From Macrostomum hystrix (Eukaryota > Animalia > Platyhelminthes), in assembly GCA_950097015.1 (NCBI GenBank), contig CATNEN010000010.1, positions 1,488,001-1,552,000 of the forward strand: DNA of 64,000 bases. Direction: 5' to 3'. Shown here piece by piece: positions 429 to 30,994 of this stretch; positions within the stretch are counted from its first letter, which is position 1; every line of letters starts with the position of its first letter. Under the pieces are notes generated by a model, which ran no database searches, had not been told where the DNA came from, and was given only the letters and a program-made list of their open reading frames with translations. Both the position numbers and the translations under genes were made by a program.

Positions 429-2210
429 ATGGCCCTGAGCTTGCATTTCCTACTTTCAATGTCAGCTTTCACTCTTCAATGCGCCACCTCAATAATTTCG
501 CCGGACGAGGCTGTCATGTCGGCACTGAGGCTCGACACCGATTACAAAAATGGAGCCAGGCCGCCACCTGACAATGGCACCGCAAACACAGTCAATGCCT
601 TTGTCTTCTTGAACACTCTGGCAAAAGTGGTTAGTGATTTTGCGAAAATTGAGTTCAGACGCAATTTTATTTCATTGCGATTCAACCCAACCAAACAGCA
701 AACTCGTTATGTACATAGTTCCCTCCTGACCGAAGAGTACGATCCACTAGGAAACGTTTAGCAAAACCTTGGCTCACAACACGGCGGATGAATTATTTTT
801 TCAGGATTCCACAAACCAGGAAATAACAACGAAGGTTTGGTTCACTATGGTAAGTCCAGCAAAGTTGACTGTTTACTGCCGTTTCACCAAAAATGCACCA
901 AACCGAGTTGCGATTTGCAGCACTGGATTGATCTTCGGCTTTCCTGGCTGGGAAAGTTTAACTCAAGTCTAGAAAACATTAGCGTTGTGCATGTGCCCCA
1001 GAGCATGATTTGGCAGCCGGATGTAACTTTCTTCGACGCGTAAGTCATGAAAACATCATACAGTTTCCTCTTTAGCGAACAAGGATAAGTGGCAACTGAC
1101 AAGTCACTGACACTTTCCAGAATAAGCGTTACAGCATACTCAGTGATATCACAGACCTCTGAAGTGCGGAACACGGGGCTAGTGCTGACTGGCAATGGTT
1201 ACATCATCACATCGAAGTGCAAGATGGACATGCGCTATTTTCCATTCGACACGCAGACTTGCTTTCTGGGACTGCTGACCACCCAGCAACTGACGGGTGC
1301 TATTCGACTAAAAATAAAGCCGATATCCGAAAATGACTCGACTACTCAATACCTCTCGGGCAGCAACGAGTTCTGCATTTTTGGTGTCGACATTCTCAGT
1401 GCTGAACTAGGAGGCTATTATACGGCGGCAGTTAGGATTAGTTTCAAAGTAAGTCTGTCACATCTCTAAAAAATTATAACTTTGGGATCAATGATTAACT
1501 AGATTTAAACTTATACTGCACACTATTGAAACGAATGGCGAAACTTCCCTATGATCGCAGCGATTGCCAACCTTCTACATCGTCAACTTGATACTGCCGA
1601 GTGTTCTGCTCGTCGCTATTTCTACGATTCCATTCCGCCTGCCGCCCGAGTGCGGTGAGAGAATGTCATTCAGCATCACGATCGTGTTGTCCATGTGCGT
1701 GTTCCTGCAGCTGGCCGGCAACTATACGCCCACGCAGAGCGAGTCCGTGCCGCTCATCAGTGAGCTCCATTGTTTAAAAGTACAAAACAATCGAATTGCC
1801 TTGAAAAATCTGGACCAAAAGTTAATTTTGGTTAATTTTCAGCTTATTACACTGTGGCTACAGTTCTAGTAACTGGGCTGAATGTACTCTGCAACGCATT
1901 CGTGCTCAGCTGTCATTTTAAGCAGCGAAACGATGGACCGGTCAGCAATAGGGTCATTCGCTGGCTGTTCCTGAGAAAAAGAAGCAGGCAGATTGGGGTA
2001 GCTGTTGGGCACAACGCGACTTCAAATCAGCCTGAGCCATCTGATAAGGAAGATGTCCATAGTAACGAGTGGAAGGCAGTCATAACTGCTGCTGATTCTA
2101 TTTTTTTCTGGCTTTTCATAGCAGCCACTGTTTTTATCTTTACTGTGTCGCTTAGTTTTCAGGCTAAGCTCATTGGGAAAAACTGCCTTGCCGCAAGTGA
2201 TTATGTTTAG
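429..2210 (+). CDS. Cys-loop ligand-gated ion channel subunit, nAChR-like non-alpha (copy A), intact, ~419 aa
   Basis: Six GT-AG exons join in frame: 429-629, 805-849, 921-1039, 1121-1448, 1561-1759, 1843-2210. Signal peptide, RPPPDNG, WQPD (loop A), Cys-loop CKMDMRYFPFDTQTC (C-x13-C), M1-M2 with GERMSFSITIVLSMCVFLQL, M3, short loop, M4. Confidence 0.93.
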
Positions 2211-2821
2211 CCTGCGGCATTCGTTTCGTTTTTCTTCATGGCCCAGTATAATATTTGATGTTATCTAATAATGAAAGAACACAGAGAAATTATATAGGAG
2301 ATAAAGCTCCTAAATGCTAGATTTCGCGCAATGATGAGCCTCATAAAACTAAACGAAATAAATGGCGTTGGTTGTCACTTTTTATTCCTCTAGTGACAAG
2401 CCTAAAACGCACTCCAGACTATCTGTAGAGAACGTCTGCAGTATATTTTAACGAGTATATTTTAACAAGCGCAAGCATTAACTATTTTAGGTCTAAATTA
2501 TTATAATTATCTGTTCCACAGAGACCACTTCAAGTTCTAAAAGAGCTGCTCATTGTAATTATACTCGTATTTCGAGTAACTTACTGTGGTGCTTAGACAT
2601 AGCGGGACTGTGTGACGCCTCGAAAGGCTCCAATGTAAAGAATGTACGAGCGTATTGTTCTTGCAGTTTAGACACAAATACAACAATTTGTGGCCAAGAA
2701 TTTAATGTCTGGGGTCTCGACTTAAAGTCTATATAAGTTTTGGGCTACTATAGGTTAGTATTATAGACCAAAGCGCTGATTTCAATATGCACTTCGCTAT
2801 CAGTAGAAAAGAAAAATATTG

Positions 2822-5800
2822 ATGTCAGAACTTGCGCCTCAAGCGAAGGCGGCGTACGACGGCGACTTGGAACACCTAAAACTTTATATCCGGTCCAGTG
2901 GAATTAAGGGTGCGAACTATGTTGACCAGTCTACTAAAATGAGCCTGCTTAGTCTTGCCGTCATGAGCAACAATCCAGAAGCCGTTCGTTTCCTCTTGAG
3001 CAAGAGAGCTCGCCCTACCTTTTCAAATCCAGGCGGCATGACTCCTATAATGCTTGCTTCTAAATTCTGCAAGCTGGAAGCGGCTCAGGTCCTAATTGAA
3101 AGTAACAAGCTATCAGGCGAAGATCTTTCTGTTAAGGATTCTAAAGAGTATGATGCACTGATGCACTGCTGTTACGAGTACAATCAAAGTAAATCCAAGG
3201 AAGACAGGGAGAAATTTAAAGCGATAGCTAAACTGTTAATCTCTTCGGGGATCGACTTAAAGCAGCGAGACAAGCTAAGACGGAGCGCTTTGCACATCGC
3301 TATCGAAGAAAAATGCGTGGAGATTTCCAAAATTATTATTGAGAGTGACCGCTGTGAGTTGACAATGAAGGACAACAAAAGAGACACACCTCTGATTTTG
3401 GCCTCAAAGAATGGACAAACTAAGATCACCGAACTTCTGGTGGAGCGCCTCAACAATAGTGAAATCGATACAACTAATGCTGAAGGAGACACGGCCTTAC
3501 TGCCGCGGCAGCGCATGGTAATGTGAGGCAGCTGAAGCTCCTACAGATGGCCGGCGCTGACATTTTCCACAGGAACCGCAGAGGCTTGAACGCAATTGGT
3601 GTAGCCCAGGACAAAGCCAATCGTGACGCCATTCGATTCCTGGAGAGGCTTTACAATGATAAGAAAGCGTTAGTTATCTCTGAACGGCTGATTTGCATTT
3701 TGATTTCTAGAACACTTTTTTTCATCACCGAAGAAGACGAAAACGAAAACATATTTTTCACTTCAGGAATTTGATGGTTCGACAGAAGACAAACATGGAA
3801 AGCGGTGAGTCTGTTCACTTCTACAACTACAAGCAACCACTTTAAGCTGAGAAAAAATTCTGTAATAGATTTGGCTTTGAAACTTTCTTGTTTTCTCGTA
3901 ACTAGAACTCCGAGCCTTAAAGAATGCAAATTTAAAACTGAAATTTCTTCAAATAGTTGATGTTGTGAGGTACTCTTTTCATTCGATGGAAATCAATTAT
4001 GAATTTTTGCTCAAAATGATTAAAGTTGTGGATTTCTATTATCTTGAATGTCACAGGGTACAACCTTATTTAAATGCAGCCATTCACATGGTTGAAAATA
4101 CAGTAGTAACAATTGTCTGGGCTGTGTGTAGCTCGTATTACTAATGAAACTCGAAAAACAATTGCAGATCCAGCCTTTTTTGACGAAATGTTTGGCCTAA
4201 TAAAAAATAACATCCGCCAGCAATTCCAAAGCAATCTTTCCACCGTGCTCAACGTTGACGCTCTAAGCGATAAAGAAGGGCATGAATATAGCCTCCTCAT
4301 GGCGGCCGCAAAGCACAACCGCATTCAGCTTATTCAGGACCTAGTGAATGCTGAAGCTAATTTGGACCTCTGCGACAGAAATGGCAAGACGGCTCTTCAC
4401 TACGCCGTTGAAGAAGGCAGTGTTGACTCCGTCCTGAAGTTGCTTAACTGCCAAGCCAATCCTAATATTCAGGAATTTGAACATGGCTACACCCCTCTCA
4501 TGATGTGCTCAAAAACGAAACGCTTTCGAGAAGAAATAGTTCGACATTTTTTAACGTTCAGGGCAGATTTAACCCTGAAATGTCGTGATTCGGCCAATAC
4601 AGCTGCACACTTGGCCGTGGTGCATAACAAGAAAACACTGTTGAACCTGTTACTTGAAGGCAACAGTCATTGTGTGCTTTCGAGCGTAAATGAGCGTAAA
4701 GAAACGCCACTACTCTTGGCTGTCAAACTGGACAAAAAAGAAGCTATTAGAACTCTTGCATTGTATACTTGTAGGTGCCCCGAGCACCAAGCTTGTAACA
4801 CTGAGCACCTTGAGCATTGCGACCTAGATGGGAACACGGCTTTCTCGTTGGCGGCTAGTCTCGGCCATCTCGACATAGTTCAACTGCTGGAGAGGTCGGG
4901 GGCGAACTTCAAACACCGAAATCGATCAGGGATGGAACCCATCGATCTTGCAGGGGAAGCTGGACATTCGCAAGTCGTCGAGTACATTAGCAAGCTGTAA
5001 GTTTTTTGTTCACTTTCGATTTTTTGGGTTGCGTAAATTTACTATTTTAAAGATTTAAAGATACCATTGAATCTCTACAAAAAATGAAGCATTTTAGAAG
5101 AAGATATATAAATTACGTAGTGGCCAACGCAGGCACTCATAGAAATAGGTGGAAAGTCGGTGACGTTAATGTTTCTGTCATGAAATACTAAAGCTCAACA
5201 TAAATTCTAATTTAAATAGGAAGCGAACTTGGCGCTACCCTTCCATGTTGCTACGTAGCAAGAACGAGTACCGTGGCGACTGTGTCTACATCTCCGTCTC
5301 GTCCGACAGCGCTCACGAACTGGCTGTCACATATGATGGGAACAGACTGTTGAACCTCTTCCAAACAAAATTGCGCTTTAAGTTTAGGCCGATGAGCAAT
5401 CCTTCAGCAAAAGAGATGCAGAAATATATGCAGGATATCGCCAATGAGGACCACAGCCGCAAAGCATCCTTCATTTGTGTTGTATCTGCCCACGGTTATA
5501 GCGATGAGGAAACAAAGAGAACCTACATTAAAGGAAGAGATTCCACTGATGCTTCTACCGAGAGTGCCACCAAGCAACTAATCAGTGTGGAGAATCTGAT
5601 CGACCCAATCACAAAATGCGCAACTCTCAAGGGCAAGCCGAAGATCTTCTTCATCCAGTGTTGTCGTTGTCTGCAGTCGGGTCTCCGAGATCGCGCTGTT
5701 CGGACGCCAGCCAGAGGAGCTCGAGGAAACAACCAGAGAGACTTGTCTGACCTACTGCAGGTTTATTCAACTTCGTCCGGTGATGTCGCTTTAAGGACTC

Positions 5801-6012
5801 TTCGTGGAACAGTTTTCATCCAAAAACTTTGCGCGTTCATTGAGAATTACATGGAAAGGCACCACCTTCGAGAGATTATTGACAAACTGGCGGCCTCCAT
5901 GAACGACGAACCTGTGTGTCAGAATCTGTTCCAAACCATAGAAATAAGAGGAAATCTGCCAAAAAAGATGTACTTTCATGATGAAGAATTGCCGAGGGAG
6001 TCTGAATGGTGA
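2822..6012 (+). CDS. Ankyrin-repeat/caspase fusion (~835 aa if a 1-nt frameshift at ~3500 is corrected); catalytic His/Cys retained
   Basis: Exons 2822-3668, 3767-3804, 4168-4996 and 5220-6012 have GT/AG ends and matching phases. Multiple ankyrin motifs (GMTPIMLAS, RSALHIAI, DTPLILAS, GKTALHYAV, GYTPLMMC, ETPLLLAV, GNTAFSLAA). C-terminal caspase motifs ICVVSAHG, LKGKPKIFFIQCCR, GTVFIQKL and KKMYF. The frame slips at TTA CT/GCC GCG GCA (3497-3510). Confidence 0.82.
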
Positions 6013-6753: not shown

Positions 6754-7310
6754 CGAAAGCCGATCTTTTACGTCTTGAATCTGATGCTACCCAGCGTCCT
6801 CTTACTCGTCGTCTCGGCAGTCACGTTCCGCATGCCGCCAGAGTGCGGCGAGCGAATCTCCTTCAGCATCACCATCGTGCTGTCCATGTGCGTGTTCCTG
6901 CAGCTAGCCGACAACTACACGCCAACGCAGAGCGAGTCTGTGCCGCTCATCAGTGAGTATTTTCTGTTTTCAAAAGATAAGGTATTTCAGCTGTTTCATA
7001 GTAGCCTGTTCAGCAAAAAAGCGCTCGAGTTAACAATCGACTCATCCGGCTTCTCTTCCTCAACCGAATGGTTTCTGGTAAATTTGCACCTCAAAAGGTG
7101 GCCGCTTCTAGCGCTACTGGAGTGTCCGATCACACTGGTGCGACTCACAGCGAGATCAAAGTTAATTACAACGAATCGGAGAAGGTGGTGACTTGTGCAG
7201 ACTGGATTTTCTTCTGCACCAACGTGGCGCTCACCGTTGTCATAATAGGCAGCGCCTTCAGCTATATGAGCAGGCTAAGCAACACACGCTGTGTTCAGTC
7301 TAGTCCTTGA
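6754..7310 (+). pseudogene. Orphan 3' module of an nAChR-like gene (copy B): intact M1-M2 exon plus a last exon lacking M3
   Basis: Exon 6754-6952 has both splice sites and encodes RKPIFYVLNLMLPSVLL...QSESVPLI. Downstream, RVNNRLIRLLFLNR...CADWIFF...TRCVQSSP* is present but the M3 segment is deleted. No exons 1-4 are recognisable upstream. Confidence 0.75.
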
Positions 7311-7899
7311 TTTTCAGTGCCAGTTTTCTGAATTTTCTCTTCTTCGTCACTTTGGTTATCGTCGTTAACAATAGCAAGAAACACGTTTAAATGCATATTA
7401 ATCTACGGTTCTACTGACCATCTATCGAGCTATCCTTCCTACACAATTTTGTCAATTTTTATCGTTTCTATGAGGTTTCAATTAGTCTTCAACGCGGCGT
7501 TGAACTCGTTATAATCTGACCATGCAGATGTTAATTTGAGGCAAAACACGAAGCAGAAAATGCGTTTTTACTTCTCGCTGAACAGTTTTGTCTGCAGCTC
7601 TTTTGTCGTCTATTTTTAGGCTGATAAAACGAATTGTTCAATGAGTAGATAAAAAGGTATCCCATGTAATCACCACCATTTTATCGAATACGTAATGATA
7701 TATATATTATATATATATAGATAGATAGATGGATATATATAACGCGCACGGCTGTTTATTGACCATGGTATGGAATGCGGCGAGCACCACACGCACCCTC
7801 CATTATCCCAGCTAACGCTGGTACCCATTTAATAGCTGGGTGAAATGAAGCACAGTTACGTGTCTTGCTTAAGGACACGAATTTTCCAGGTGTCGTACG

Positions 7900-8760: not shown

Positions 8761-9224
8761 AGAAATTAAGGAATTGAAAAAATTTATAGACTAAAGTAGT
8801 TTCGAGTCGAAGAGCTTGACTTTCAAACCTGTTAAGGCATAAAAATAAAAAAGCGACAAGTGTAATAAAGAGTGAATCAGAAGCGCGTTCATGAATCTAT
8901 ACAAAATTATAATGTTAATATTTGTGTTACTTAAAAGATACAAAAGTAAAAGACTTTACAAAAGTTGAGTACAGTCTTCCGGTCCCCTGACTCGAAAGGT
9001 GATGGCGGTGCATAATATTGAATTACGAGGTAACTCTTGTTGTGGGAAACGTTTAATAGGGGAAGCCTCGGTGGGAAAACATTTTCAAGGCCGGAAAAGC
9101 CTGCACTGGCTGGAAAATCTCGGCGGGAAAGCTCGCTGCGTGAAATGCTTGAGGGGAAAGACTCGGTGCTAAAAACTGCTTCGGAGCCGTGAGCCGCAAG
9201 GAGAGCCGTGAGCACCCATTGCGC

Positions 9225-9293
9225 ATTACTTGGTGACAGTAGAACCGCAACCAGCGAGGAGGCAGCTCTGCTCGTTTCAATGACTCCTGAGCA

Positions 9294-9335: not shown

Positions 9336-9336
<1 letters not shown>

Positions 9337-10220: not shown

Positions 10221-12286
10221 ATGCCATTGCGTCATTCCATCAAGATCATTTGGATGACCTTCTATATGGTTGGTTTTTCAGTAATCGTCTCGGCGTCCGG
10301 CTCTCTGTCACCCGATGAGGTTGTGGCGAAAGCACTGAGCCTGACTACCGACTACAACAGCGCTCTGAGACCACCACCTGACAATGGGACTGCTAATACA
10401 ATCAACATATTTATATACTTTAATAGTCTACTGAAAGTGGTTCGTCGCGACCAAATATTTTCGCAATGTCGTTAGAAAGAAGCATGTTCTAAATGTCTTA
10501 TAAAATATATTCTCACTCTCCCATTGCAGGATTCAACCAGCCAGGAAATAACGACTAAACTTTGGCCTCAATTGGTAAGGCAGCGAAACACGTTAAAATT
10601 ATTTTATTGGACAACCGAACAAATTGTGATACATAGGCCCTGAGAACACTTTCATAAAATGGAAAAAATTGATTATAGTATTTTCATAAGCTTCTAATTG
10701 CCGTAGTGATTATACATTTTCGTTTCTGTGTTTCGAGCATATTAGCAATGTTACTTGCACGTCGTATTCATAAAAGTAATTCATAAAAGTTACGAACGGG
10801 ATTACCAGAGAAAAAGACCCCACTCACTAACACTCAAAGGTGCGAGTGTAGGCCATTTTGATTCGCAAAAAGGCTCCATTTTTTATCCGACCCAAAGTAC
10901 TGGCTGGACAGTCGGCTTCAGTGGCTCGGCAAGTTTAATTCCACGCTGGACAATATCAGCGCGATCTACTTGCCATCCAGCATGGTCTGGCAGCCGGATT
11001 TCATTTTCTATGACGCGTGAGGAACTGACGGCTTATTCATATTCAATTGTCGAGATCCAATCAGATTTGTAATAATTATTTCAGATTGAGCCTTTCCAGC
11101 TACTCAGAAGTCGCCCCGCTCATGGAGGTGAAGAGCACAGGCCAGGTGATGACAGGCAAAGGACAGGTCGTGACGTCCAAGTGCAAGCTGGACATGCGCT
11201 ATTTCCCATTTGACACGCAAGTCTGCCGGCTGGGCCTGGTCAGTGCCCAACAGAGGTCGGGCGTTTTCCGAGTGAAAATCAAGTCGCCCTTTGAGAACGA
11301 TTCTCCAGACGCATTCATCATCAGCAATAACGATTTCTGCATCACGGACATCCAACTGCTTCTGAGCAACCTCTCTGGTTATCAAGCTGCCGCTCTCCAC
11401 ATAAAATTCAAAGTAAGGAAGGCTAGGGGGAGTGGGTGATGCTGTTCGCGCAATAGCTGCGCTGAGCTGTCGGCTGCACATCTGGCCCAATTAGGGCAGG
11501 TTGGCCGTACTATTAGGGACGGTGTGGCCTTTCGGTCAAAAAAGACTTCCATGACTAAAAAAGCAGAAAATAATTTATAATTTTAGCGAATGCCGACTTT
11601 CTACATCATTAACCTGATGCTACCCAGCGTCTTTCTCCTCGCCATCTCCGCCATCGCGTTCTGCCTGCCGCCTGAGTGCGGGGAGAGAATCTCCTTCAGC
11701 ATCACTATCGTGCTGACCATGTGCGTGTTCCTGCAGCTTGTTGGCAACTACACACCAACACAGAGCGAGTCCATACCACTCATCAGTGAGTGAATAGAAT
11801 GAAATATTTAGGGCATTAAAATATGTAAACACCACTTTCCAAAAACAACAAAGACTGTCAGTTGATTGGCAAATAAGGATTGTGAAAATTTCAGCCCACT
11901 ACTTCATGGCTGCGATTCTTCTGACTATGCTGAATGTGCTCTGCAATGCATTCGTGCTCAGCTGTCATTTCAAGGGGCGCGGAAGCGCTGTCGTGAGCAG
12001 TCGGCTCATTCGCGCACTTTTTCTCAACGGACTCGTCACTTGGAAAAGCCCGGAGTGCAAGGTCTCTCAGCAGTCCTCGGAGCTGCAGCCCCAGTCGTCA
12101 TGCCCTGATGGCTCTTGCAGCTTTGATGCTGCCCGCATTAACGAGTGGGGAAGCGTCGTTTGTGCGGCTGATAGAATGTTTTTCTGGATTTATTGCTTTC
12201 TTTCTGCCATGCTTCTTATAGCATCATTCGGCTTCCAGGCAGTGTCCCACAATGGGACTTGTCGTGAAGCCACACTGTATTCTTGA
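10221..12286 (+). CDS. nAChR-like Cys-loop subunit (copy C), intact, ~433 aa
   Basis: Exons 10221-10439, 10530-10574, 10898-11016, 11085-11412, 11587-11785, 11895-12286. Internal exon sizes (45/119/328/199) and phases match copy A. Cys-loop CKLDMRYFPFDTQVC. Confidence 0.93.
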
Positions 12287-12959: not shown

Positions 12960-13085
12960 TTCTGTTCCTCGTCTATTTTATTCTGTTTACAATCGTCTTC
13001 CGCATGCTGGCCGAATGCGCGAAAGTTCTTCAGCGTCACGTGCTGGACATGTGCGCTTTCCTGCAGCTGGTCGGAGTCCATAGTC
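12960..13085 (+). pseudogene. Degenerate remnant of the nAChR-like M1-M2 exon
   Basis: gcatgctggccgaatgc...ttcagcgtcac...catgtgcgctttcctgcagctggtcgg aligns by eye with exon 5 of the intact paralogs, with several deletions. Confidence 0.55.
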
Positions 13086-13819
13086 CTCAAACGCAAACAG
13101 CGTCTGTTACAGAATCTTTAGACTATTTTGAGACGCCGTATAGACCTTAAGAACTCAAAAAGTCTCTATAGAGTCTCAAACTTATCAAAAAGTAGATTGT
13201 ATCTAAAAATGATCTAAACTGAGCTGTTTTTTGCATTTTGTCATACACATTATCGGCTCACTGGATTCATCGGGTTAAGCTATCACGGCAGATCATATCC
13301 AAACTTTCCAGCCCCGTCCAAAAAATTGCAACCGAAATCCGAATCGTGAAAGCGCTGAAAGCTTGGATGATCAATTTGAATTTATGGATAGCAAAACGCC
13401 TGCTAAGTGCATGATGCTAGCCCGATTTTTTTATCAAATCGTAATCTATGCTCGACAATGTCTTTTTTAGTGGTTCGCAGCTTCTTTCAGAGAACTTACC
13501 TAAGTGGTAAGTTCTGTGGTAAGCTCTGTGGCCTCTATACGCTTACATTTCCTTCTTAGTTTATAATTAACCTACTTTCACATGTCTAAGCATAGTAAGG
13601 CTTGCTTACTATGCTAAAGTTTCAAAATATTTTCGCAGATAAAATGAAGCACTTGCCTAGTGAATTGCGCTCATGACTGTGATCGTTCTAAGTTTCGCCG
13701 ACACACCAAGGATGGGATTTATTGTTCTACAAAATAAAATAAACGAGGAAAATTCGTCGAAGATAGATTCGGGCAGTCATATAAATTAGTCTGCCAGCCC
13801 GAATTTTAAATATTGTGAC

Positions 13820-15817
13820 TTAGTTTTGAACTTTTCCCAGACATTCCCCACGAAATACGACCAGCTGAATCGCGGCCAGACTCATAGAGAGGCTAACGGT
13901 GATCAGTACGAACACTGTGAAGAACACCTTGTCTGCGAGATGCACAACAATGGCCCAGTCGTTGCTGGAACGAAGAGCCGTATTGTCATTGTGGCAAGTT
14001 TGGGATTGCAAGCGAGCCGTATTAGCTGCAGAAGTATTGACTGTCAAGCTGCTCCAACGAGCTAGACGGTTGAGAAAGAGAGCGCGGATTGCCGGATTGC
14101 TCATTGGAACATTGCCGTGCTGCCTGAAGTGGCAACTGAGCACAAATGCATTGCAGAGAACGTTAAAAATTGTCAACAGCAAAGCCGAGCTGAAGTACCA
14201 GGCTATAATGCAATATTCAAAAGGGTTTTAGAGAGCTTTGTGAAAGTGTTAAGGACTGTAGCAAACTGAAATGAATATGCAAGTGGTTCTTACACATGAG
14301 CGTCACTGACTCGCTTTGAGTGGGTGTGTAGTTGCCGGCCAGCTGTAGGAACACGCACATGGACAGCACGATGGTGATGCTGAAGGAGATTCTCTCGCCG
14401 CACTCGGGTGGCATGCGGAAGGCGACGGTAGAGATTGCGAGGAGTAGAAAGCTGGGCAGAATCAGGTTCACGACGTAAAACGTCGACATCCTCTGCAGCA
14501 GAAAAAATAGGGATCAACGCATGATGCGCCTTATTGACTTGCTGGGTGTAAATTGAGCCCTGCTACAAATTATCATTCTGTTCTTACCTGGAATGTTATC
14601 TGGAACTCTGGCACAGTCTGGTATCCAATTCGCGTAGTATCATGAGCAAAACTAATGATGCAAAACTCGTTGCTTTTGGTCAGAAACAGGTCAGTAGAAA
14701 TGTTTTCTAGTGGCGTTACCCTGAGCAAGGTGCTGCCAGTTCTTTCATATGTAGATATCAGCCGCAAAGCGCAGGTCTGCCTATCGAATGGGAATAGGCT
14801 AATCTGCATCTGGCACTTTGTCGTGACTATCAGTCCGTTGTCTCGCTGCACAATGCCGCTGCTGTTCAGCTGAATGAGATCTTGAGCCCTGCCTACGTCT
14901 TTCATGTCAGTTCTGAAATCATTACAAAATTAATTTTCTGTTGACATATATAGAAACTAATGTATGATTATTTTGTTCTTAGGTAGGCATAAGTATTTTT
15001 GTGTCAGGAACTATTAAATTCTCAAAATTGACTACTAAAAAGAGAGTCCCTGATCTGTCTCTAATGGGTTTTGCCTACGCTTCAAAGAACGACACGTCCG
15101 GCTGCCAGAGCAGTCTCGCCGGAAGCACAATGGACTTGATGTTGTCCAGAGTGGAGTTAAATTTGTTTAGCCAGGCCAGACGAGAGTCGGTCCAGAGCTG
15201 AAAGGAGTTCAGCGACTGTGACTGAAATCAACTTGAAACTACCTGAAACCGCTTAATTAATCTATGCATGCATACAACAGAGGTCCAGATTCTTAGGGTC
15301 ACTTCCTGAGCCGTAGAGTCCTGAAATTGGCGGCGTCAGTTTGAAACGAGGTTATTTTTTTATTAATTTTTTTATTAACTACTACTACTGCTAACATTTT
15401 CCACATAATAGGCACTCCTAATGCAAATAGGTTGCAGGTATATTCGCAAGCAGCACCATTCACTAAGTTTATAGCATACCCCACAGGGCGCATTTTTAGA
15501 CTCCAATTGTTTCCTGGCCTTTTGATCTAGGCATATGCAATAGTACTGGGAATTTCGTAGGCTATGGGTAAACTGAGTTCAAGAATTCGTTTAGCATATG
15601 TAAACATGATGCCCAGACTCTCTCACCACTTTGGCTATGCTGTTGAGGTATACAAACAAGTGGATTGTGTTTGCACTGCCATTGTCAGGCGGCGGCCGTT
15701 GTACTCCGTTGCGAGCTTCAGGGCTGCCGCCACCACCTCGTCCGGTGAGGCGCTTTTTGTCCCGACAGCGACCGCCATAGCGGCGGCGACGATAAACAGC
15801 CAGATCGACGAAGGCAT
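13820..15817 (-). pseudogene. nAChR-like subunit (copy D): full six exons, single 10-nt deletion in exon 1
   Basis: Exons 15817-15627, 15320-15276, 15197-15079, 14912-14588, 14492-14294, 14202-13820. Exon 1 is 191 nt versus 201 in copies A and H. TACAACGG-CCGCCGCCTGAC shifts the frame before RPPPDNG. The other exons and splice sites look intact. Cys-loop CQMQISLFPFDRQTC. Confidence 0.85.
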
Positions 15818-16449
15818 CAGTACTGACTGGCGGTCTTTGAAATCAAGGAGCTTCTTAAATTTATAGGGCCACGGGTTCACTATTTGCTATCTGCTATCGG
15901 TGGCGGACATTGCTTACAATCTAACTCATCCGCACTTGGCACTTTCGTACTACGCATTAAATTTCTTCTCAGCAAGGCTGGAGATTTCTGTTTGCTCCTT
16001 GGGCTAAGAAATTGGAAAGTGGAGTGCTTAAAGACTGATTACTCAATAAATACAGGCGCAAATACTTTATTTACGCACAGTAGACAAGTATCTTTTGGAG
16101 ACAGACAGATACAATACAATAACCAAATAAAATTTGGTTCGAAATATTGATCACTTTTTAAAGCAAAGTACACAAAGTTATCCCTGAGCCAACAAGGTCA
16201 TCTGATAAGCTGGAAATTCATTAGACATTGGACTAGTGATGTTTACGCACTGTCACAGCGCTTCACTGTACAAATTAAATCTGATAATAATTAACATGGA
16301 ACTCGGTGCACTGAATTGAGTTTTTATGACTCCAGGTACTAAAATAGCTGGCATCCTGGATAGGCTTCACTGCGAGCTTAAATCTAACGACAGCCTGTTC
16401 AAGTGTCGATGAGCTGACCTTGTTAATCAGCTTCTTCTTAGCACTAGCC

Positions 16450-18130
16450 ATGTCTTCTTTATATTTTATCATAGTGTGTGCACTTCTTTCAACGCTGCCG
16501 CTCAACAGAGCGGATGCTGGGCCTGCCTCGCCAGATAGTGCAGTGGTGGCAGCGCTGAAGCTGGCTACGGACTACAGCAGCTGGGTTCGTCCACCACCTG
16601 ACAACGGAACGTCCAATACAGTGCATGTCTACATATACATCAGCAGTCTGGTCCGAGTTGTGAGTACATTCTGAACATTCGGCAGTCAAGATTGTAGCAA
16701 CTTTGCATTGAATTTAATTTTTAGGACTCGACAGCGCAGGAGGTGACTTTGCAGATCTGGATCATGAAGGTACGAATACAGTGCCCCTTAGAAAAACTAT
16801 TAATTCGTATCCTGGGAGCAGAAAAGCATGACTTAGAATGAAATGCCACCTGCAATGGGTAGACGGTCGTCTGGCATGGCTGGGAAGATTCAGCGCAATA
16901 TTGGACCAGGTGAAAAACATCCTCCTGCCAGCCGATGTTCTCTGGCGACCGGATGTAACTCTTGTCAACGTGTAAGATTTGAATTACCTGTCTGAGGGGC
17001 CTCGTTGAGTGAACACGATCGTATAATAGTTGTATAAACTTTGAGAGACAAGTTCAGTTTAAAGGACGAGAGCACCCCTTGGAGACTAAGTGGCTTTGAG
17101 AATCTCTAAACTTAAAACTTTAATGCAAAACTAAAAAAATCCCATAGTCGTATATAGATTCCGGCTGTTCGAGCGTCCCAAAAAAGTGAAATGGAGATTA
17201 TAGTTCACAAAGTTCATGGGACGCAATGTTAAGAGCATTGAAATCCACCAATTCCCTATAGCATGGAGCAAAAGAACGCCTCCATTGAAACTTCTCCCGC
17301 GCTGGTCTTTCAAAATGGCAGCGTCCTGCATGCGAAAGAGATTGCTGCTACCTCCAAGTGCCGAATGCAAATGGAAAATTTCCCATTCGACGTGCAGACG
17401 TGCAAATTTGCAGTCTCGTCAAGGATGCAGATGCAGGAGAATATGAGACTGGTTGCCTCGTTAAAGCCTTTCAGCGGAATAATAGTTCGAAATACAATAC
17501 AAAACAATGAATTTTTGCGTCCTGGGCGTACATCTGACGCAATACGAGGATGAAAAATACGGAACCGGCACAATCGAACTGAGCATTGAGTTTTAAGTAC
17601 GTAGGATGTCTAGTGTCTAACTTGAATTGTTCGAACAAAACGTATACATAGATCTGAAAAACTCGACCATACTTATGCTAATGCGCCTAAAAATATGTAG
17701 AGAAAGCCATCTTTCTACGTGGTGAACTTGATGCTGCCCTGCGTTCTACTCCTCGCCATCTCCGCTGTTGTCTATCGTCTGCCAGCCGGGTGCGGTGAGA
17801 GAGTCTCCTTCAGCGTCACCATCGTGCTGTCCATGTGCGTGTTCCTGCAGCTGGCCGGTAATTACACGCCGATGCAGAGCGAGTCAGTCCCACTTATTTG
17901 TGAGTCCCACATTTATTGACTTTACTTTTGCATCGACTCTCAGTACTTAACGCTGGAGTAAAATCCTAACTGCAGCATGGTACTTCACCGTGGCCGTTCT
18001 GGCAACTATGTTGAATGTAGGCTGCAACGCGTTCGTTCTTAACTGTTACTCTAAGCAGCATGGCGGCTCTCGCGTCAGCAATCGACTCCTCCGTGCGCTT
18101 TTTCTAAATAAGCCGGGAAGATCTTTCTGA
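16450..18130 (+). pseudogene. nAChR-like subunit (copy E) with several lesions
   Basis: Exons 1-2 intact (16450-16659, 16725-16769). The expected exon-3 acceptor is TG not AG (16851-16852). Exon 4 has an extra T in GAATTTTTGC (~17510). The last exon stops at TGA 18128-18130, before M4. Cys-loop CRMQMENFPFDVQTC. Confidence 0.82.
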
Positions 18131-20693: not shown

Positions 20694-23075
20694 TCAGTGC
20701 CAACGTCCCTCCATACAGTCCGATTGAGACATGAAAATCGCTGCGCATGCGATGAAAATTGTCAGCCCTATTGACAATCCCAGAAATATGATGCAAAAAG
20801 CCCGATCTGCCACAGAGGTGACAATTTTCCACTCGTTTAAATTAGGATTCGCCGAACCTTCTTTGACTGACGATTGAGAGCTCGAATTAGCTGAATCATT
20901 CGAAGCAACGCCATTACTTCGCTTGACAGCAAAGCGATTGAGAAAGAGGGCGCGGATCAGCCGGTTGGTGACGCGAGCGCTGGTGTACTGCTTAAACTGG
21001 CACTTGGTGACGAATGTGTTGCACAGTACATTTAACATTGTCAGCAGCACAGCTGCACTGAAGTACCAGGCTGAAGTGGGTTTGTAGCATTGCTGCTGAA
21101 GGTATTTCAGAGAATGCTCAATACATATTGATGAGCAATTAGCATCACTGAACTCACTGATGAGTGGCACACACTCGCTCTGAGTGGGTGTGTAGTTACC
21201 GGCCAGTTGCAGGAACACGCACATGGACAGCACGATGGTGACGCTAAAGGAGACCCTCTCACCGCATTCAGGAGGCAGACGGAAGGCCACGGCGGAGATA
21301 AGAAGCAGCATTACACTGGGAAAGATCAGGTTTATCACGTAGAAGGCCGATCTTCGCTGAAGCAGGTGAGATTGCCGATATGAAAAAATCTTTCTTGCAG
21401 AATGACCGTGGGCATTAGCACATATTTTAGTGACAGTAGACCTATACAGCCAGCAAGAGGCTGGCTCCTACTACTAACTACTGACTCCGGAATATACTGG
21501 ATTCAGCCTGAATGTACAGTCTACTGGCGCAGACAAATTAGGCGAAGGCACACACTCAGACAGGGGTGTACATCTGCCCTGAATTTTCGTTTCAGAAGAG
21601 CTATTTACGATATTGTGTATTGTATATTGTGTACAGTTACTGGTGCCCCCCAAGGACGTAATTTGCACGACAAGCCTCCAAGCCTTTTCTTCACGGCTTT
21701 GCCCCATATAACTGTGGCCTCGCTGATGATTAAAGCTCAGGGACCTTGGTGCGAGAGGCAGACGTATCGACCGCTCTGCCACTCACACCCTAGTGATTGG
21801 CGACACTGTTGCCTAAACTTGCACAGGACAAATGTTCTGTCTTACAACTCCTCGCTTTTAAATTAAGCAAACGCTTCTTCTTTTAACAAGAAAACCCACA
21901 AAGAACTCACTCGAAAATAAATAACGAATTTGACGCTGCCGATACCGAGTTGATTTTCCACATCCAATGTCAGTTTTTTTATGCAGAACTCATTGTTATT
22001 CAGCATATAAGTTGAAACGTCGTCGCCCTCATACCATGGCTTTACAGCAAACTGCATCGTACTTTCGTCTTGCAGTCTCGAATAAATCCTCAGGACGCAT
22101 TCTTGCGAATCGAATGGAAAGTAGTTGAGCTTCATGCTACACTTGAATGTACTGAGCAGCTCCTGCCCATGCAATAGGTCGCCTTTGCTACTTATTTTGA
22201 CCAGTCCATCTCCAACGGAAACTTCTTTAAGCTCGATACTAAAAATATGAGGAATTGGTGGGGGCGAGTGGCGGAGCGGCAACGTTCCAATTCTCACATC
22301 AGAGTGTGAAAGTCCCAGAGACCCATGACGCCCATGAGGGCAGACTCCTCAAGGTACAGTGATAGTGTACCATCCACTAAGGGGTCAGCGGAAAAGGCAG
22401 AATTGCCTCCTCGCTGGCTGCAGGTCGACTGATTTTCATTCATGCGTCAGTGTACACAGCCCCCAGCGAACAGTACTATTAATGATGATAATTTAAATAA
22501 TTTTGGTTTTGTGGAGTGTCTCAGTTCTGTGAATCTTATTCAGAAAACTAAGCAGAAATCTCACGCATTATAAACTGAGGCATCCGGTTTCCAAACCATG
22601 TTTGGGGGCACAAAGATTGAAGTCACATTATCTAGGCTTGAATTGAACTTCCCAAGCCAGGCGAGGCGTGGGTCCAGCCACTTCTAAAAAGTAAAATTGC
22701 GAATCAATTCAGCATTTTCACAGTTCATTTCTTCAAGCTTGCAAATAAAAAATGCAACCTTCTCAAGCCAGAACTTCAGCGTCACCTCCTGCGATGCTGA
22801 ATCCTGCAAAGGGAAATAATTAGGGGCCAAACTTCTTCCTATCTTAAAAGTAGACCAGTATTTCTCACCACTTTTACTAGACTATTGACATAGACAAAAA
22901 TAATGACAACAATGGTGCTCCCGTTGGTAGGTGGCGGCCGCGCGGCGCTGTTGTATTCAGTGGCGAGCTTCAATGCCGACATGACCAACTCGTCTGTTGA
23001 AACCTGCGCAGCAGCCTCGACAGCGATCGCCGCCACGGCTGCCGTGAGGATGATGATAGCTCCTAGAGTCAGCAT
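20694..23075 (-). CDS. nAChR-like Cys-loop subunit (copy F), intact, ~424 aa
   Basis: Exons 23075-22869, 22803-22759, 22683-22565, 22238-21911, 21356-21158, 21070-20694. Same sizes and phases as the paralogs. Cys-loop CSMKLNYFPFDSQEC. Confidence 0.92.
21555..21790 (-). mobile_element. tRNA-derived SINE copy in intron 4 of copy F
   Basis: Reverse strand begins GGGTGTGAGTGGCAGAGCGGTCGATACG...TCTCGCACCAAGGTCCCTGAGC, matching the head at 34383. Confidence 0.75.
22330..22415 (+). mobile_element. Partial SINE copy in intron 3 of copy F
   Basis: GCCCATGAGGGC...AAGGTACAG...GTGTACA and GGCAGAATTGCCTCCTCGCTGGCTGC blocks are shared with the other copies. Confidence 0.65.
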
Positions 23076-23859: not shown

Positions 23860-24370
23860 TCCAGCTGCGATCCCCAAGCCTTGAAAACATTCAGTACATT
23901 CTGATGCCAGCCAGCAAGGTCTGGGAGCCGGAGCCGGAGCTCACTGTGCAATGCGAAAAGAATAAAACTAAGCTTAAATACATGAGTACATGCTAATCAC
24001 AGTTTGCATTACCATCGACGTAAAAGCAAGGACTTTGGAACCAGCACCAATTTGTTTAAGGCCGGTGTATTGGCTTAGGACAGTGACGCAAGCTTCCGAA
24101 TGGAAAGGAATTCCAGTTTCACATACGCAAGAGCCCGTTACGAGCATTGCAATGCACTAATGGCAAAATCACTGAACATCATTAAAATCCTAAAAACAGC
24201 GCCAGTCAACATTCTACCTCGTGAAACCAATGCTGCCCTGCGTCCTCCTTCTTGCCATCTCCGCCATCGCCTCCGAATGCTTCCTTCAGCATCGGCTGTC
24301 TATGTGCGCGCTCCTGCAGCAGGCCAGCAACTACACCGCCACACAGAGCAGACCATGGCCATCTCCGAGT
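23860..24370 (+). pseudogene. Heavily degenerate nAChR-like gene (copy G): remnants of exons 3 and 5
   Basis: LENIQYILMPASKVWEPE at ~23880-23935 resembles exon 3. 24198-24355 resembles exon 5 (TTCTACCTCGTG...ATGCTGCCCTGCGTCCTCCTTCTTGCCATCTCCGCC...AACTACACC) with deletions. Confidence 0.65.
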
Positions 24371-25859
24371 CAGCTGATTTCACTCTGTAACTTTTTACAA
24401 TAAAGTTATTTTACTAAATAACTCTGTATATTTTACCGTGTCAGTTCTGATGACGCCTTCGCGCTCAGCTTCGTGATCATTTGCGCGGTAATTTTTATCC
24501 GTATCTTTATTCGTCAGACTTTCGAAACAGAATGCAGCAGCGACCGACAGCAGGGAGCGTCAGTCCCTGGGTGATGCTTCTAAGCTTCAAGAAAGTTATT
24601 GGGCAGCTACTGGGGCTTTAGTGGGATAAACTGCCTGTATTCATGCTGCAAAAGTTATTAGCGGTCAAAATGCTGAAAGATTTTGGCACTTAAACTTTAC
24701 ACTTGAGCATGGAATGCTCTACTCGTATATACCCGTAGCGTTCCTCGCAAGAGGAGCTCAACTGGACAGGAAGTGAAAGTCTACCGGGTACAACATACCA
24801 GTCAACTTTTAGCCCTGAGAATCTATCGGATTTTTTGATTGGCTGAGCGCACGCACTTAAATTTATCCAAGCTTAGTAGATAAGGATCAACTGGACATTA
24901 AGACAACGGACTCTGCGAACATTTTCAACTTTTTCTTCATGCTCACACGTTATTTTGTAAATAAAATGCGACCTATTTGAACCAGTTCCAACCAGTTTTT
25001 AACCCGCTTTGCGCTGATTGGCTGGCCTAGCAGCGCATGTGTGGGCGCGCTAAACTGCTTTGGCCCCACCTCCTCCCTGCACCGCACCGTCTCTATATTA
25101 ACTGCTCGCTGGCAATGGAAAATCCACTTATGCTACTGTTTTACAGAATTACGATATTACCTTCGGGTATAATACAAGAGAATTAGAATTAATTTGTAGA
25201 ATTCAGCTCTCTGGTGCCAAGGAGGCAGCCCACAGCCATGAGTGGAACATTGTCCTTCTTGCAGCTGATCGAGCTTTCTTTATTGCGTTCATTCTTACAC
25301 CCTGGCTATTGCGACTAGCCCAGTTATCATGCAGTTGAATACACGCAGTGCAGTCTGTGTAGGCGAGTTGGCCGTATAAAACTGTCATGCAAAAATCGGT
25401 AAAAGCGTACACCACTTTTCGTGCCGTCAAATACCGGAGCTAGTTTATATTTTTAGCTTTTTTATTACTGCGCGCGCATACTTTACGTTGCTCGCTAAAG
25501 TGACAGAAGGGCCTTTTTCTATCACACTCAATATGGCTTGTATTATCACCTTTCTGTTCTGTCCACACTACCCAAAGAACGATTTTCAATCCGAAACTGT
25601 GAAAACTTGTCGGGCTGAAAAATATACACTACACCTTTTTAATTTCAGTTTCAACTAAAATCAAGTTTGCGGAACTCAAATATATGGCTGGTTTGCGCAG
25701 TGGCACTAACCAAAGTTTGTATTAACTGCCACCCCCTACCGCGGCTTGCGTCCCCTCCGCTGAGGTGGGAGTTTATTTATGTCATGGCATGGCTTGTGTA
25801 GCCCAACTGCCTTGGTCAGATTTTTTATGCCACGCAGTAACTTTTTTGAGACAGCTGAG

Positions 25860-27882: not shown

Positions 27883-30800
27883 ATGGTCCTCATCCTGATC
27901 TTGGTTGCCCTTCTGTGCCCCAGTGCAGAGGCTGAAAAGTTTGCATCATCATCTCCGGACGAAGCTGTCTTGAATGCTTTGAAGCTGTCGACTACCTACA
28001 ATAGTGCAGTGAGGCCTCCACCAGACCATGGCCAGGCCAACACAATCAATGTCTACGTCTACCTGAACACTCTGGTCAAAGTGGTAAAATGCCAAGTGCT
28101 ACCTATGAAGTTTTAGCTCTTCTCACTTCTGAAATTGGCAGAGTTATAATATAGCTTCTTTTATATTTTAGCCATACTTTTGCTCTGGAAATATTATAAC
28201 GGTGACATTCTAAATAGTCTTATACGACTTATGCGAGCGAATGCTAGTGCTGGGGAATCTGCCAAGATATTTTGCCTTTAGATGCTCATGTACGAGTACT
28301 TTAAGCTGAGCAGCCACATGAACCAAATGAGTATAGTAAAATTAATACGGCATCTGGATACGAAGAAATGAGCGGAAGTGAGAAAGGGTTAATATATTCT
28401 CTAGCGTATAAGATAAATTCTAGTCGTCTCATTGTCTCATGGTGACTGCTAGATGACTTATGGATCAATCAGCATGGGATAAAGCCGCTAAAATACCTAC
28501 GCATGTCATTTTATAGGACTCGACCGCCCAGGAACTAAGACTGAAAGTTTGGATGCTCGTGGTAAGCTTGTGAATTCAGTAATGCCAAATTTTAGTAATA
28601 TAGAGAAATTTTGTAACCATCATATTGCCCACCGTTGTAAGCATTCAGTAAAGTTTCCTTTGTTTGTGGAAAATATTACGACTCTTACATGTACAACATA
28701 CAACATTCTCAAACACGCTTTTAGGGCACTGTGCACTTAGTTTAGGTTTGCTTAGTGCAGCACTAAGCAAATAGTGCCCTAAGAGCGTGCTTCACCGTCG
28801 ACATCACAGGACAGAAGTTCTGTGTTCTACATAGTGTTGGTTTTGGGAAGTGGAAAGAACTCCCATCCGGTTTTAGTGAGTATCAGCCTTTAGCTCAACT
28901 CTGCAGAAACATGGTATTACGTCTCGCTTTTCTTTCCCGTTTACATTATCCGACTCTTTAAGCCAAAAGAATATTAGTTGAAGGCTAATAAATTAAATTA
29001 AAGTCTTCCACAGTACAAGTATGAGCACTGCTAGGTCAATACAGCTCGATGATTTTTTCGCATGAACTTCCCATGCTGCATCTAAAAAATGGCCAAATCA
29101 ATTGTCATTTTAGCACTGGATGGACAGTCGCCTGGCTTGGAAAGGCAAATTCAACCGCAGCCTGGATAACATCAGCGCCATCGGGCTTCCAGCTAGCCTG
29201 CTATGGCAGCCGGATGCCTCCTTCTACGATGTGTGAGAGTCGAATTCATTGCTTCTTGATTCCTAGCGCTGTCACGCCGAGATAGGGCCCGTGGCGAAGT
29301 TGTCCCGCAGCCAGAGTGAAGCAGATTTTTACTGATTGATGAATTCAGAGTTAACATCAGACTGATCTCTCCTGACTTTCTCATTTTAAATGTCTCACCG
29401 AAATTGTAGCCCTATAAGTGCGAAGTCGTGTCGTCGGGGTTAGGCTCGAAATTAATGCGACATCATGAATTAAAACCGATCCGCAGTGAGATACTTCACC
29501 GCGCTTTTACTTCAAAATAAACTTCAGGGTTGAGCTCACTGACCAGACAGAAGGCAAGGCGACATTCACAGTGATGTCCTCAGGGCTGGTACTCAAGAGC
29601 ACTGGCATATCACTAACGACAAAGTGCGGTTTGCAGATGCAGCGCTTTCCCTTCGACACACAGGACTGCACCGTGAGGGTCTCCACACTCCAGCAACTGA
29701 CAGGTGCCACTCAGCTCCAGATAAAGTCGTTAGTGGAAGGTGACTCACCTGAGAGGTATATTATAAAAAGTAGCGAGTTCTGCATTCAGTGGGCGAAGAT
29801 TGAGAGCGGAAATTTCGGGGATTACAACGCGGTTCTTTTAAGGATAGGCTTTCAGGTGAGTCTTTGATTTTGAGATACTTGTAGAGCTACGAGTACATAC
29901 GAGCTATAAATTCGATACGAAATTGACTTATAAACAGTAGTTTCTTTACGATCCACTTTCCCAGAGAATACCAACCTTCTACGTGGTGAACCTGATGCTG
30001 CCGAGCTTCCTCCTTCTCGCCATCTCCGTCATCGCCTTTTTAATGCCACCTGAGTGCGGTGAGAGAATCTCCTACAGCATCACCATCGTGCTGTCAATGT
30101 GCGTGTTCCTACAGCTGGCTGGAAACTACACGCCAACGCAGAGCGAGTCCGTGCCTCTGATCAGTGAGCTAAAATAGAAATATTGAGTAATATAATCGTA
30201 ATAATGACATTTCATTTGGGGCTCTGAGCACTGGTGAATTAACTGACGACAGTCGACCCGACGCCAGACCCCTACTTTCAAACACTGATGTACGAAGACA
30301 GTGAGGAGGCAATTCCGCCCAGACTACTGAGCATACGCTGGCTGACGTACCAGATCTTCCCCCTGACTTTCCCATCGTCAGGCAGTGTTGTGTAAACTCT
30401 AATTTTTATTGGGGTTTGGCATCGGCATAAATTGCCTGACAGGCCCACGCCTTCTCAGCGCAGTTGCGTCCCAAATAAATGCAGCCTCGCCACAGATTCG
30501 GACTGTAGTGAAAGAGTGAAACGCGTTATCGCTCCGCAAATTTCCCCGACATTATGTATATAGTGAGACCTACAAAACACAATTCACTTCTGTTAAGATT
30601 ATTTTCCTCAATAACTCATGCAGCTTGGTACTTCAGTGCGGCTGTGGTGCTAACAATCGCAAACGTTCTCTGCAACGCATTCACCCTTAGCTGTCACTTC
30701 CAACAGCACAGCAGCCAGCGCGTCAGCAGTCGGTTTATCCGCGCAATCTTTCTCAACAGGTTTGTGATTAAGAAAGCCACACGGATTTCTGCCACATGTT

Positions 30801-30994
30801 CCGAGATTGTAGGATCACAATCATCCGATTCGAGCTCTGCGACCAATATTCGCGACACTGAATGGACTGTCGTCAGCGCTTCTGCGGACAGAATGTTCTT
30901 CATAGCTTTCAGCTTTGCTGCATTGGCGATGATGTTCGTGCCAGTTGCAATATATCTGATGTTCATGAATATGCAGTGCTTGGGCATGAACTGA
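27883..30994 (+). CDS. nAChR-like Cys-loop subunit (copy H), intact, ~420 aa
   Basis: Exons 27883-28083, 28517-28561, 29114-29232, 29528-29855, 29965-30163, 30624-30994. Cys-loop CGLQMQRFPFDTQDC; M2 GERISYSITIVLSMCVFLQL. Confidence 0.93.
30285..30545 (-). mobile_element. Diverged SINE copy in intron 5 of copy H
   Basis: Reverse strand has CCTGACGATGGGAAA, GAATTGCCTCCTCAC and TGTCAGGCAATTTATGCC blocks plus a degenerate A/B-box-like head. Confidence 0.6.

Follow-up and report, generated by a model that had tools for sequence, protein, structure and literature searches.

Much of the channel repertoire of invertebrates consists of orphan Cys-loop receptors and, to our knowledge, ligands have been established for very few of them. 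Large expansions of nAChR-like receptors have been described from lophotrochozoans (PMC6896357), and one orphan invertebrate receptor that belongs to these expansions, Alpo4, lacks the loop-C Cys pair and has no known agonist (PMC10338036). In this regard, a stretch of 64,000 nucleotides from the flatworm Macrostomum hystrix (contig CATNEN010000010.1, positions 1,488,001 to 1,552,000; hereafter the window) raises the question of what gates a cluster of receptor-like channels in which key residues of the transmitter site are missing. Here, we present gene models for this cluster together with analyses of its pore, ligand pocket, kinship and divergence. On balance, we lean towards the view that the genes of the cluster code for subunits of pentameric Cys-loop channels that are cation-selective, belong to a macrostomid clade and are gated non-canonically by another ligand or an ion. 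A literature search returned no paper describing this family of flatworm Cys-loop genes.

Gene content and channel architecture

Searches with the exons of gene A (tblastn) located nine related Cys-loop receptor loci between positions 429 and 30994 of the window, a span of ~31 kb (Table 1). The complete loci are all built of six exons, and their GT-AG introns agree in phase. An initial annotation of this DNA, made from its letters alone, had already described nine loci in 31 kb with six exons wherever complete, and the searches and gene models bear this out, with intact copies confined to genes A, C, F and H (419-433 aa, free of stops). The remaining five loci are damaged, namely one frameshifted gene (D, with the frameshift as it stands in the assembly sequence), one pseudogene with multiple lesions (E) and three fragments. 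In pseudogene E, exon 3 has lost its acceptor, which reads CAA, an additional T in the run at ~17510 shifts the frame (NEF|C), the last codon of exon 4 is TAA, and exon 6 runs into a stop at 18128 and is without M4. In fragment B, neither tblastn nor the list of open reading frames revealed exons 1-4 or M3.

Table 1 Receptor loci in the window, with exons listed in order of transcription.
Locus	Position	Strand	Exons	State	Basis
Gene A	429..2210	+	429-629, 805-849, 921-1039, 1121-1448, 1561-1759, 1843-2210	intact, 419 aa	GT-AG reading of DNA; no stops
Fragment B	6760..7310	+		copy of the M1-M2 exon (80% identity with A) and M4-like remnant	tblastn, ORF list
Gene C	10221..12286	+	10221-10439, 10530-10574, 10898-11016, 11085-11412, 11587-11785, 11895-12286	intact, 433 aa	
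M1-M2 exon relic	12989..13108	+		46% identical over 43 aa	tblastn
Gene D	13820..15817	-	exon 1: ATG 15817, donor after 15627; exons 2-6: 15320-15276, 15197-15079, 14912-14588, 14492-14294, 14202-13820	exons 2-6 intact; exon 1 frameshifted by a deletion in GGCCGCCGCC run near 15700	
Pseudogene E	16420..18127	+			
Gene F	20694..23075	-	23075-22869, 22803-22759, 22683-22565, 22238-21911, 21356-21158, 21070-20694	intact, 424 aa	
Pseudogene G	23877..25293	+		decayed relics of exons 3, 5 and 6	tblastn
Gene H	27883..30994	+	27883-28083, 28517-28561, 29114-29232, 29528-29855, 29965-30163, 30624-30994	intact, 420 aa, introns longer	

Each intact gene encodes a signal peptide, a ligand-binding-type extracellular domain and four membrane helices with a short M3-M4 loop. 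This loop measures 51 aa in A, 59 aa in C, 57 aa in D, 55 aa in F and, counted by eye, ~56 aa in H, in agreement with the ~50-60 aa first estimated. Exons 3-6 of gene A match the Pfam domains Neur_chan_LBD and Neur_chan_memb, both of which are also listed for relatives in Macrostomum lignano. The Cys-loop has the form C-x13-C, with FPFD.Q.C invariant across 20 family exons; the C-x13-C/FPFD signature is present individually in A, C, D and F and was read in H.

The pore is of the cation type, with Glu at -1' and Leu at 9' of M2 and without a Pro-Ala-Arg motif before M2. The PPECGER-M2 segment, which does not vary among A, C, D, F and H, lines up with SGEK/SGER of beta2 and 5-HT3A, and the M1-M2 exon matches nAChR beta2, 5-HT3A and alpha7 at E ~1e-11, with GE(R/K) at -1'/0'. 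All pore-lining positions compared (-4' E, -1' E, 2' S, 6' T, 9' L, 13' V, 16' Q and 20' N) are the same in these five genes. The features that define the Cys-loop superfamily and its cation-selective branch (nAChR/5-HT3/ZAC) are present and, judged from sequence, the cluster genes are Cys-loop channel subunits with a cation-type pore.

Ligand pocket

Pocket positions were mapped by alignment in the five genes A, C, D, F and H. The loop-B strings quoted in the initial annotation proved exact, being LGLLTTQQL (A), LGLVSAQQR (C), LRLISTYER (D), LRIYSRLQD (F) and VRVSTLQQL (H), and the column of the loop-B Trp is filled by T, A, T, R and L, respectively. None of the five genes carries this Trp and none has a vicinal CC of loop C in exon 4, just as the annotation had stated. 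Its wider claim, that the acetylcholine-binding box is lacking, stands only in part. The loop-B Trp, the Cys pair and the first loop-C Tyr, whose column is a gap in an alignment that is uncertain in loop C, are gone; the loop-A aromatic (F/Y) and the loop-D Trp remain in five of five genes, whereas only A, C and H keep the second loop-C Tyr. Of the five positions of the aromatic box three persist, so that a quaternary-amine ligand is conceivable. Compared with nAChR/5-HT3 types, loop C is shortened by 5-6 residues, the segment from beta9 to pre-M1 comprising 27-28 aa vs 31-35, and an extra Cys in beta9 (NEFC) is invariant.

Neither the nAChR nor the 5-HT3 pocket type was recovered. The nAChR combination of a loop-B Trp with the Cys pair and two loop-C Tyr of alpha-type subunits was absent, as was the 5-HT3 combination of a loop-B Trp of the W183 type with 5-HT3-like loops; the Trp of the 5-HT3A string TSWLHT has no equivalent in the flatworm genes, in which the M3-M4 loop and loop C are also much shorter. 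Alpo4 resembles the family in being an orphan without the loop-C Cys pair, but its aromatic cage is complete, loop-B Trp included (PMC10338036), which that of the flatworm family is not. Its structural match is Z 22.8.

The fold was examined through the M. lignano relative P0158, modelled with AlphaFold in place of the window genes (pLDDT 81, pTM 0.74). The model has a full beta-sandwich and four helices, with a loop-C turn of 4 residues. It matches the folds of nAChR and 5-HT3A best (Z ~25), and the Foldseek and VIA matches span residues 18-430.

Kinship, divergence and age

The family comprises ~23 loci in this genome, the largest cluster being that of the window. Among 1.84 billion proteins, only those of M. 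lignano match it above the general Cys-loop background, which upholds the earlier description of the family as lineage-specific. Exons were searched singly, and the full-length M. lignano proteins P0158, P0154 and P0097 served as proxies in full-length searches, tree and fold comparison. A word search with P0028 found three M. lignano proteins and one skate 5-HT3A only, while that with exon 4 of gene A gave no match among proteins of 60-190 aa and hence carries little weight. Contigs encoding P0154 were M. lignano genome contigs only, none of them transcript-like.

The family is monophyletic in the tree (SH-aLRT 100) and groups weakly (58%) with a clade that joins skate 5-HT3A to teleost proteins called '5-HT3A' or '5-HT3A-like'. 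Teleost '5-HT3A-like' proteins without the Trp, considered as kin or as ZAC, are 5-HT3A-derived and score against the family profile at general background, and the Glandiceps protein P0035, considered as a member, is an ordinary nAChR-like protein.

With nAChR (alpha7, alpha4, beta2 and muscle types) the family shares the fold (Z 25-26), a place among the best sequence matches (E ~1e-33), the M2 type, the loop-A aromatic and loop-D Trp, and a 45-nt second exon encoding D-x-x-x-Q-x-x-T-x-x-W. It differs in the pocket and loop-C length as described above, in an identity of just 20-24%, and in not being placed within the nAChR group by a tree that contained no vertebrate nAChR sequences. 5-HT3A ties with nAChR (E 1e-33, Z 25.1), and nAChR alpha4/alpha7 and 5-HT3A are equally close in sequence and fold. 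An affinity to nAChR, as proposed in the initial annotation, is one possibility among others, given this tie and the support of 58 for the sister group.

Identity between copies is 28-50% in exon 4, which spans the Cys-loop to loop C and is the least alike, 43-69% in exons 1-3 and 74-86% in the pore exon 5, confirming that the extracellular exons are highly divergent. For exon 5, omega between copies is ~0.1 with dS at or beyond saturation; omega was below 0.5 wherever computable, with no sign of positive selection. The neighbourhood is conserved with M. lignano, and several window copies have one-to-one counterparts there, among them P0160 for gene H (59% identical in exon 4), P0028 for gene D and the P0001 units. 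Between-species dN/dS was given up because dS is saturated and counterpart pairs are just 39-59% identical in exon 4. The saturated dS and the one-to-one counterparts indicate that the copies are old and do not stem from a recent burst. The term expansion, used at the outset, is therefore apt for a multi-copy cluster but not for a recent event, and birth-and-death evolution, also suggested then, fits because intact genes and pseudogenes stand side by side.

These data also bear on whether the whole cluster is decaying, with no functional copy left. The broken loci would agree with this, as would the failure to find transcript-derived family proteins in protein collections. However, the persistence of four uninterrupted reading frames of ~420 codons and of all their splice sites despite saturated dS, the low omega of the pore exon and the retention of counterparts in M. 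lignano make wholesale decay most improbable.

Candidate modes of gating

In the reading that we favour, the genes belong to a clade known to date from macrostomid flatworms alone, in which the classical agonist pocket is remodelled, with the loop-B Trp replaced, the first loop-C Tyr and the Cys pair absent, and loop C shortened. Neither acetylcholine nor serotonin would then gate the channels at the canonical cation-pi site, and some other ligand or ion would act instead. The invariant shared pore together with the divergent extracellular domains suggests that the copies sense different things and may co-assemble.

A bolder and decidedly tentative step would be to regard this clade of ~23 genes without a transmitter-type pocket as a new functional class of ligand- or ion-gated cation channels sensing external or non-classical cues, arisen independently of but in parallel with cephalopod chemotactile receptors or ZAC. 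The family pairs a pore that does not vary with extracellular domains that diverge strongly and are without the canonical cation-pi Trp. Identification of a ligand would reveal how a Cys-loop pocket is repurposed and would test whether flatworms, as cephalopods, made sensors from transmitter receptors. Should the genes turn out to be ordinary neuronal subunits, they would represent a routine lineage-specific expansion. The family is compact and easily cloned, and M. lignano, of the same genus, is a laboratory model with in situ hybridisation, RNAi and transgenesis.

Cephalopod chemotactile receptors are clustered, lineage-specific expansions that no longer use the acetylcholine site, and a chemosensory or environment-sensing family, put forward by analogy in the initial annotation, would parallel them, each flatworm extracellular domain detecting different external chemicals in sensory cells. 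Clustering, lineage restriction, the loss of the transmitter-binding Trp, the interspersed pseudogenes and a ligand-domain exon far more divergent than the pore exon all point this way. Yet the copies are old and paired one-to-one with M. lignano rather than turning over rapidly, their omega values give no sign of positive selection, and the 4-residue loop C of the model would leave little cap for bulky organic ligands. CRT1 and CRB1, although Cys-loop cation-channel relatives, do not appear in the 60 best sequence matches from the PDB and reach only Z 18.7-19.0, below nAChR and 5-HT3A at ~25 and below GABA-A receptors, and any similarity would be convergent. On this analysis we regard a chemosensory role as rather unlikely.

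ZAC, a vertebrate family, offers another comparison, in which the flatworm channels would be gated by ions or protons, or be constitutively leaky to cations, the truncated loop C leaving the pocket open for small ions in preference to organic transmitters. Both are compact, at ~420 aa with a short M3-M4 loop, and the very short loop C of the family recalls that of ZAC, reported to be much shorter than in other Cys-loop receptors (PMC11536092). Specific kinship is lacking, as ZAC falls outside the best 60 PDB matches and its Z of 21.5-23.3 lies below nAChR, 5-HT3A and GABA-A, and apart from the single beta9 Cys no conserved cluster of His, Cys or Glu came to light. Such a mode of operation appears very unlikely.

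Quite unlikely, too, is that the genes encode non-binding structural or complementary subunits that join Trp-bearing relatives (C33/C39 type) or ordinary nAChR-like subunits in one channel and only modulate them. The loop-B Trp is retained in ordinary non-alpha nAChR subunits, which counts against this possibility, some 20 highly divergent extracellular domains would be unusual for mere accessories, and Trp-bearing members account for only 2 of the ~23 loci. In its favour are the identical pore-lining residues of all copies, the Trp retained in loop D of the complementary face, and the presence within the clade of members that keep the loop-B GSW (L006, L007 and P0097).

Exon plan and state of the loci

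The initial annotation had described nine related loci with one six-exon plan wherever complete, and this was borne out: gene A exons used as tblastn queries hit nine loci at 429-30994, and inspection of the DNA, including every candidate splice site, showed six exons, GT-AG introns and identical intron phases common to every complete copy. Exon 1 encodes the signal peptide and N-terminal helix, exon 2 (45 nt) the motif D-S-x-x-Q-E-x-x-x-x-x-W, exon 3 (119 nt) a segment with W-Q/K-P-D-x-x-x-F/Y at its 3' end, exon 4 (~328 nt) the Cys-loop and loops B, F and C, exon 5 (199 nt) the stretch from pre-M1 through the M2-M3 linker, and exon 6 M3, a short loop and M4. The products of the four intact genes are 419-433 aa long and free of stops, and a fifth gene, D, is readable from exon 2 onwards. 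In pseudogene E the exon 3 acceptor is lost, an extra T lies between NEF and C, the last codon of exon 4 is TAA, and exon 6 is truncated and lacks M4.

Channel loci and neighbouring elements in the window, and loci of a second Trp-less family elsewhere in the genome
Feature	Position	Strand	Remarks
Gene A	429-2210	+	intact
Gene C	10221-12286	+	intact
Gene D	15817-13820	-	exons 2-6 intact; exon 1 with frameshifting deletion within GGCCGCCGCC run
Pseudogene E	16420-18127	+	
Gene F	23075-20694	-	intact
Gene H	27883-30994	+	intact
Fragment	6760-7310		tblastn
Fragment	12989-13108		tblastn
Fragment	23877-25293		tblastn
Ankyrin-repeat ORFs, then Peptidase_C14 (caspase) ORF	2819-6012	+	between gene A and the fragment at 6760-7310 (B)
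ORF with integrase zinc-binding domain	7756-8760	-	mobile-element remnant inside cluster
Short ORF pair	19161-19683	-	mobile-element remnant inside cluster, maybe transposase relics; just past truncated exon 6 of pseudogene E
Mariner/Mos1-type transposase, broken copy	31473-32649	+	split across two ORFs; directly after gene H
RPS24-like ORF	38669-39025	-	intronless
Mariner-type transposase ORF	41450-42589	-	intact, 379 aa; between RPS24-like ORFs
RPS24-like ORF	46656-47012	+	intronless
Tandem repeats	47.8-49.2 kb, 53.4-53.9 kb, 62.2-63.3 kb		long; open in several frames
Second Trp-less family (L014-L016, L019, L023, L024)	C11:4.74 Mb, 3.96 Mb; C37:4.02 Mb; C39:8.38, 17.36, 7.14 Mb		other contigs of the same genome (G000)

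Pore, fold and binding pocket

The spliced models were searched singly by exon, and Macrostomum lignano database proteins served as proxies for full-length work. The exons matched the Pfam domains Neur_chan_LBD and Neur_chan_memb, and the M1-M2 exon was about equally close to nAChR beta2, 5-HT3A and alpha7 (E about 1e-11). Aligned to beta2, the pore carries E at -4', E at -1', R at 0', S at 2', T at 6', L at 9', V at 13', Q at 16' and N at 20', all identical across A, C, D, F and H, and is of the cation type. For P0158, a family member from M. lignano used as a proxy whose database sequence lacks about five residues near beta2, AlphaFold gave a model (pLDDT 81, pTM 0.74) with a full beta-sandwich and four membrane helices; its best structural matches were muscle nAChR, alpha7 nAChR and 5-HT3A (Z 25-26), whereas ZAC (Z 21.5-23.3), Alpo4 (Z 22.8) and the cephalopod receptors CRB1 and CRT1 (Z 19.0 and 18.7) matched less well.

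The binding pocket was mapped by aligning the window exons, entered as fragments, with alpha-type references, a mapping that is uncertain in loop C. At the loop-B Trp column the genes have T, A, T, R or L; the column of the first loop-C Tyr is a gap, and other residues stand in for the Cys pair. The loop-A aromatic (F/Y) and the loop-D Trp, encoded in exon 2, are retained in all five genes and the second loop-C Tyr in A, C and H. The acetylcholine-binding box, which the initial annotation had taken to be lost, is thus remodelled rather than erased; the loop-B strings quoted there, the absence of a CC pair and the length of the M3-M4 loop (51-59 aa as measured) were all correct. Two features go beyond those observations. 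The beta9-to-pre-M1 segment measures 27-28 residues, shorter than the 31-35 of nAChR/5-HT3-type proteins, and the loop-C turn of the P0158 model has only 4 residues; further, all 20 aligned family exons carry a Cys directly behind the beta9 aromatic (N-E-F-C), for which the tier-1 extracellular domain offers no obvious partner.

Age, extent and affinities of the family

Among the five readable genes, identity is 28-50% in exon 4, in line with the strong extracellular divergence reported earlier, 34-44% in exon 6 and 74-86% in exon 5. Synonymous sites are close to saturated or already past it: in exons 3, 4 and 6 dS is at least 1.5 or not computable for the majority of pairs, and in exon 1 it ranges from 0.84 upwards to values that could not be computed. 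Omega lies around 0.1 in exon 5 and, wherever computable, below 0.5 in exon 4. The lower dS of the pore exon (about 0.7-1.3) compared with that majority may stem from constraint at the codon level or from an old gene conversion confined to exon 5. In the tree of exon 4, H and M. lignano P0160 form a pair (95), D clusters with P0028 and the second P0001 unit (95), A is sister to C (94), and F falls with the first P0001 unit and a copy located 110 kb downstream. The fused M. lignano prediction P0001 thus has an F-like unit next to a D-like one, the same arrangement as in the window; the cluster is therefore older than the split of the two species, and it has retained several members since then. 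Loss is continuing, as the pseudogenes and fragments show. Birth-and-death evolution, as initially proposed, agrees with intact genes lying beside pseudogenes and fragments, but it is old and not a recent burst, given the saturated dS and the M. lignano counterparts.

The pore exon is present in about 19 copies at ≥76% identity in the 220-Mb genome (8 in the window, 3 elsewhere on the same contig, 8 on contig C32), with a second tier at ~50% on contigs C30, C33 and C39. An exon 4 profile recovered 23 loci at 66-110 bits, separated by a gap from roughly 75 other Cys-loop matches among those listed, at 53 bits or less. When the profile was also run against 1.84 billion representative proteins, ranked by per-domain score, just nine exceeded the 50-57 bits of the general background; all come from M. 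lignano and have a Trp-less loop B, eight of them with the N/D/S-E-F/Y-C motif, and no trematode, annelid, mollusc, echinoderm or fish protein exceeded background in this search. The RPS24-like ORF at 38669-39025 had a single match, an M. lignano protein at 87% identity, which makes the genome that of a relative of M. lignano. A literature search found no paper describing the channel family. Public M. lignano models of the family (P0028, P0031, P0158, P0001, P0004) are often faulty, with the 45-nt exon skipped, exon 3 mis-spliced or antisense-derived C-termini, and some merge two to four tandem genes in one protein.

A tree of 36 proteins, lacking vertebrate nAChR and ZAC members, unites the three tiers in a single clade (SH-aLRT 100) that includes the C33-type protein P0097, which keeps the loop-B G-S-W, as does exon 4 of a C39 copy (L007). 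These Trp-bearing members are consistent with Trp loss within the clade. A tentative sister grouping with a clade of skate 5-HT3A and teleost proteins named '5-HT3A' or '5-HT3A-like' has 58% support, and in sequence the full-length proxy P0158 is as close to nAChR alpha4/alpha7 as to 5-HT3A (E about 1e-33); the description 'nAChR-derived' is therefore not established. Compact teleost '5-HT3A-like' proteins of 419-447 aa (P0088, P0136, P0114, P0125) also lack the loop-B Trp, and P0136, the one checked, is clearly 5-HT3A-derived (E 1e-46 compared with 1e-31 for alpha7), a case of vertebrates losing the transmitter Trp in parallel.

Possible roles and other elements

The likeliest reading is that the genes specify subunits of pentameric cation channels, the extracellular site of which would have given up canonical binding of ACh or 5-HT. 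The invariant pore and divergent extracellular domains fit subunits that would differ in what they detect and may co-assemble. Rivals to this reading are a chemosensory family, possible by analogy, and accessory subunits that would serve the Trp-bearing relatives. ZAC-like gating by small ions is a further rival, the sole pointer to it being the short loop C, a feature also reported for ZAC (PMC11536092). A dead cluster is unlikely, because four long intact ORFs persist at saturated dS.

The second Trp-less Cys-loop family in the genome is unrelated, consisting of intronless ORFs of 428-445 aa in a clade of their own (100), with a conserved D-Q/E-G where the loop-B Trp would stand (e.g. FFFSDQG, LFVSDQG, LMMNDQG) and the M2 sequence 'GEKLGFGITIMLSYTVFLLLLDG'. 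The tandem repeats comprise SNARQSNCPQ-type, PLPSPLHSLH-type and TVPASILP-type units. The two RPS24-like ORFs lie in inverted orientation, and their translations look the same.
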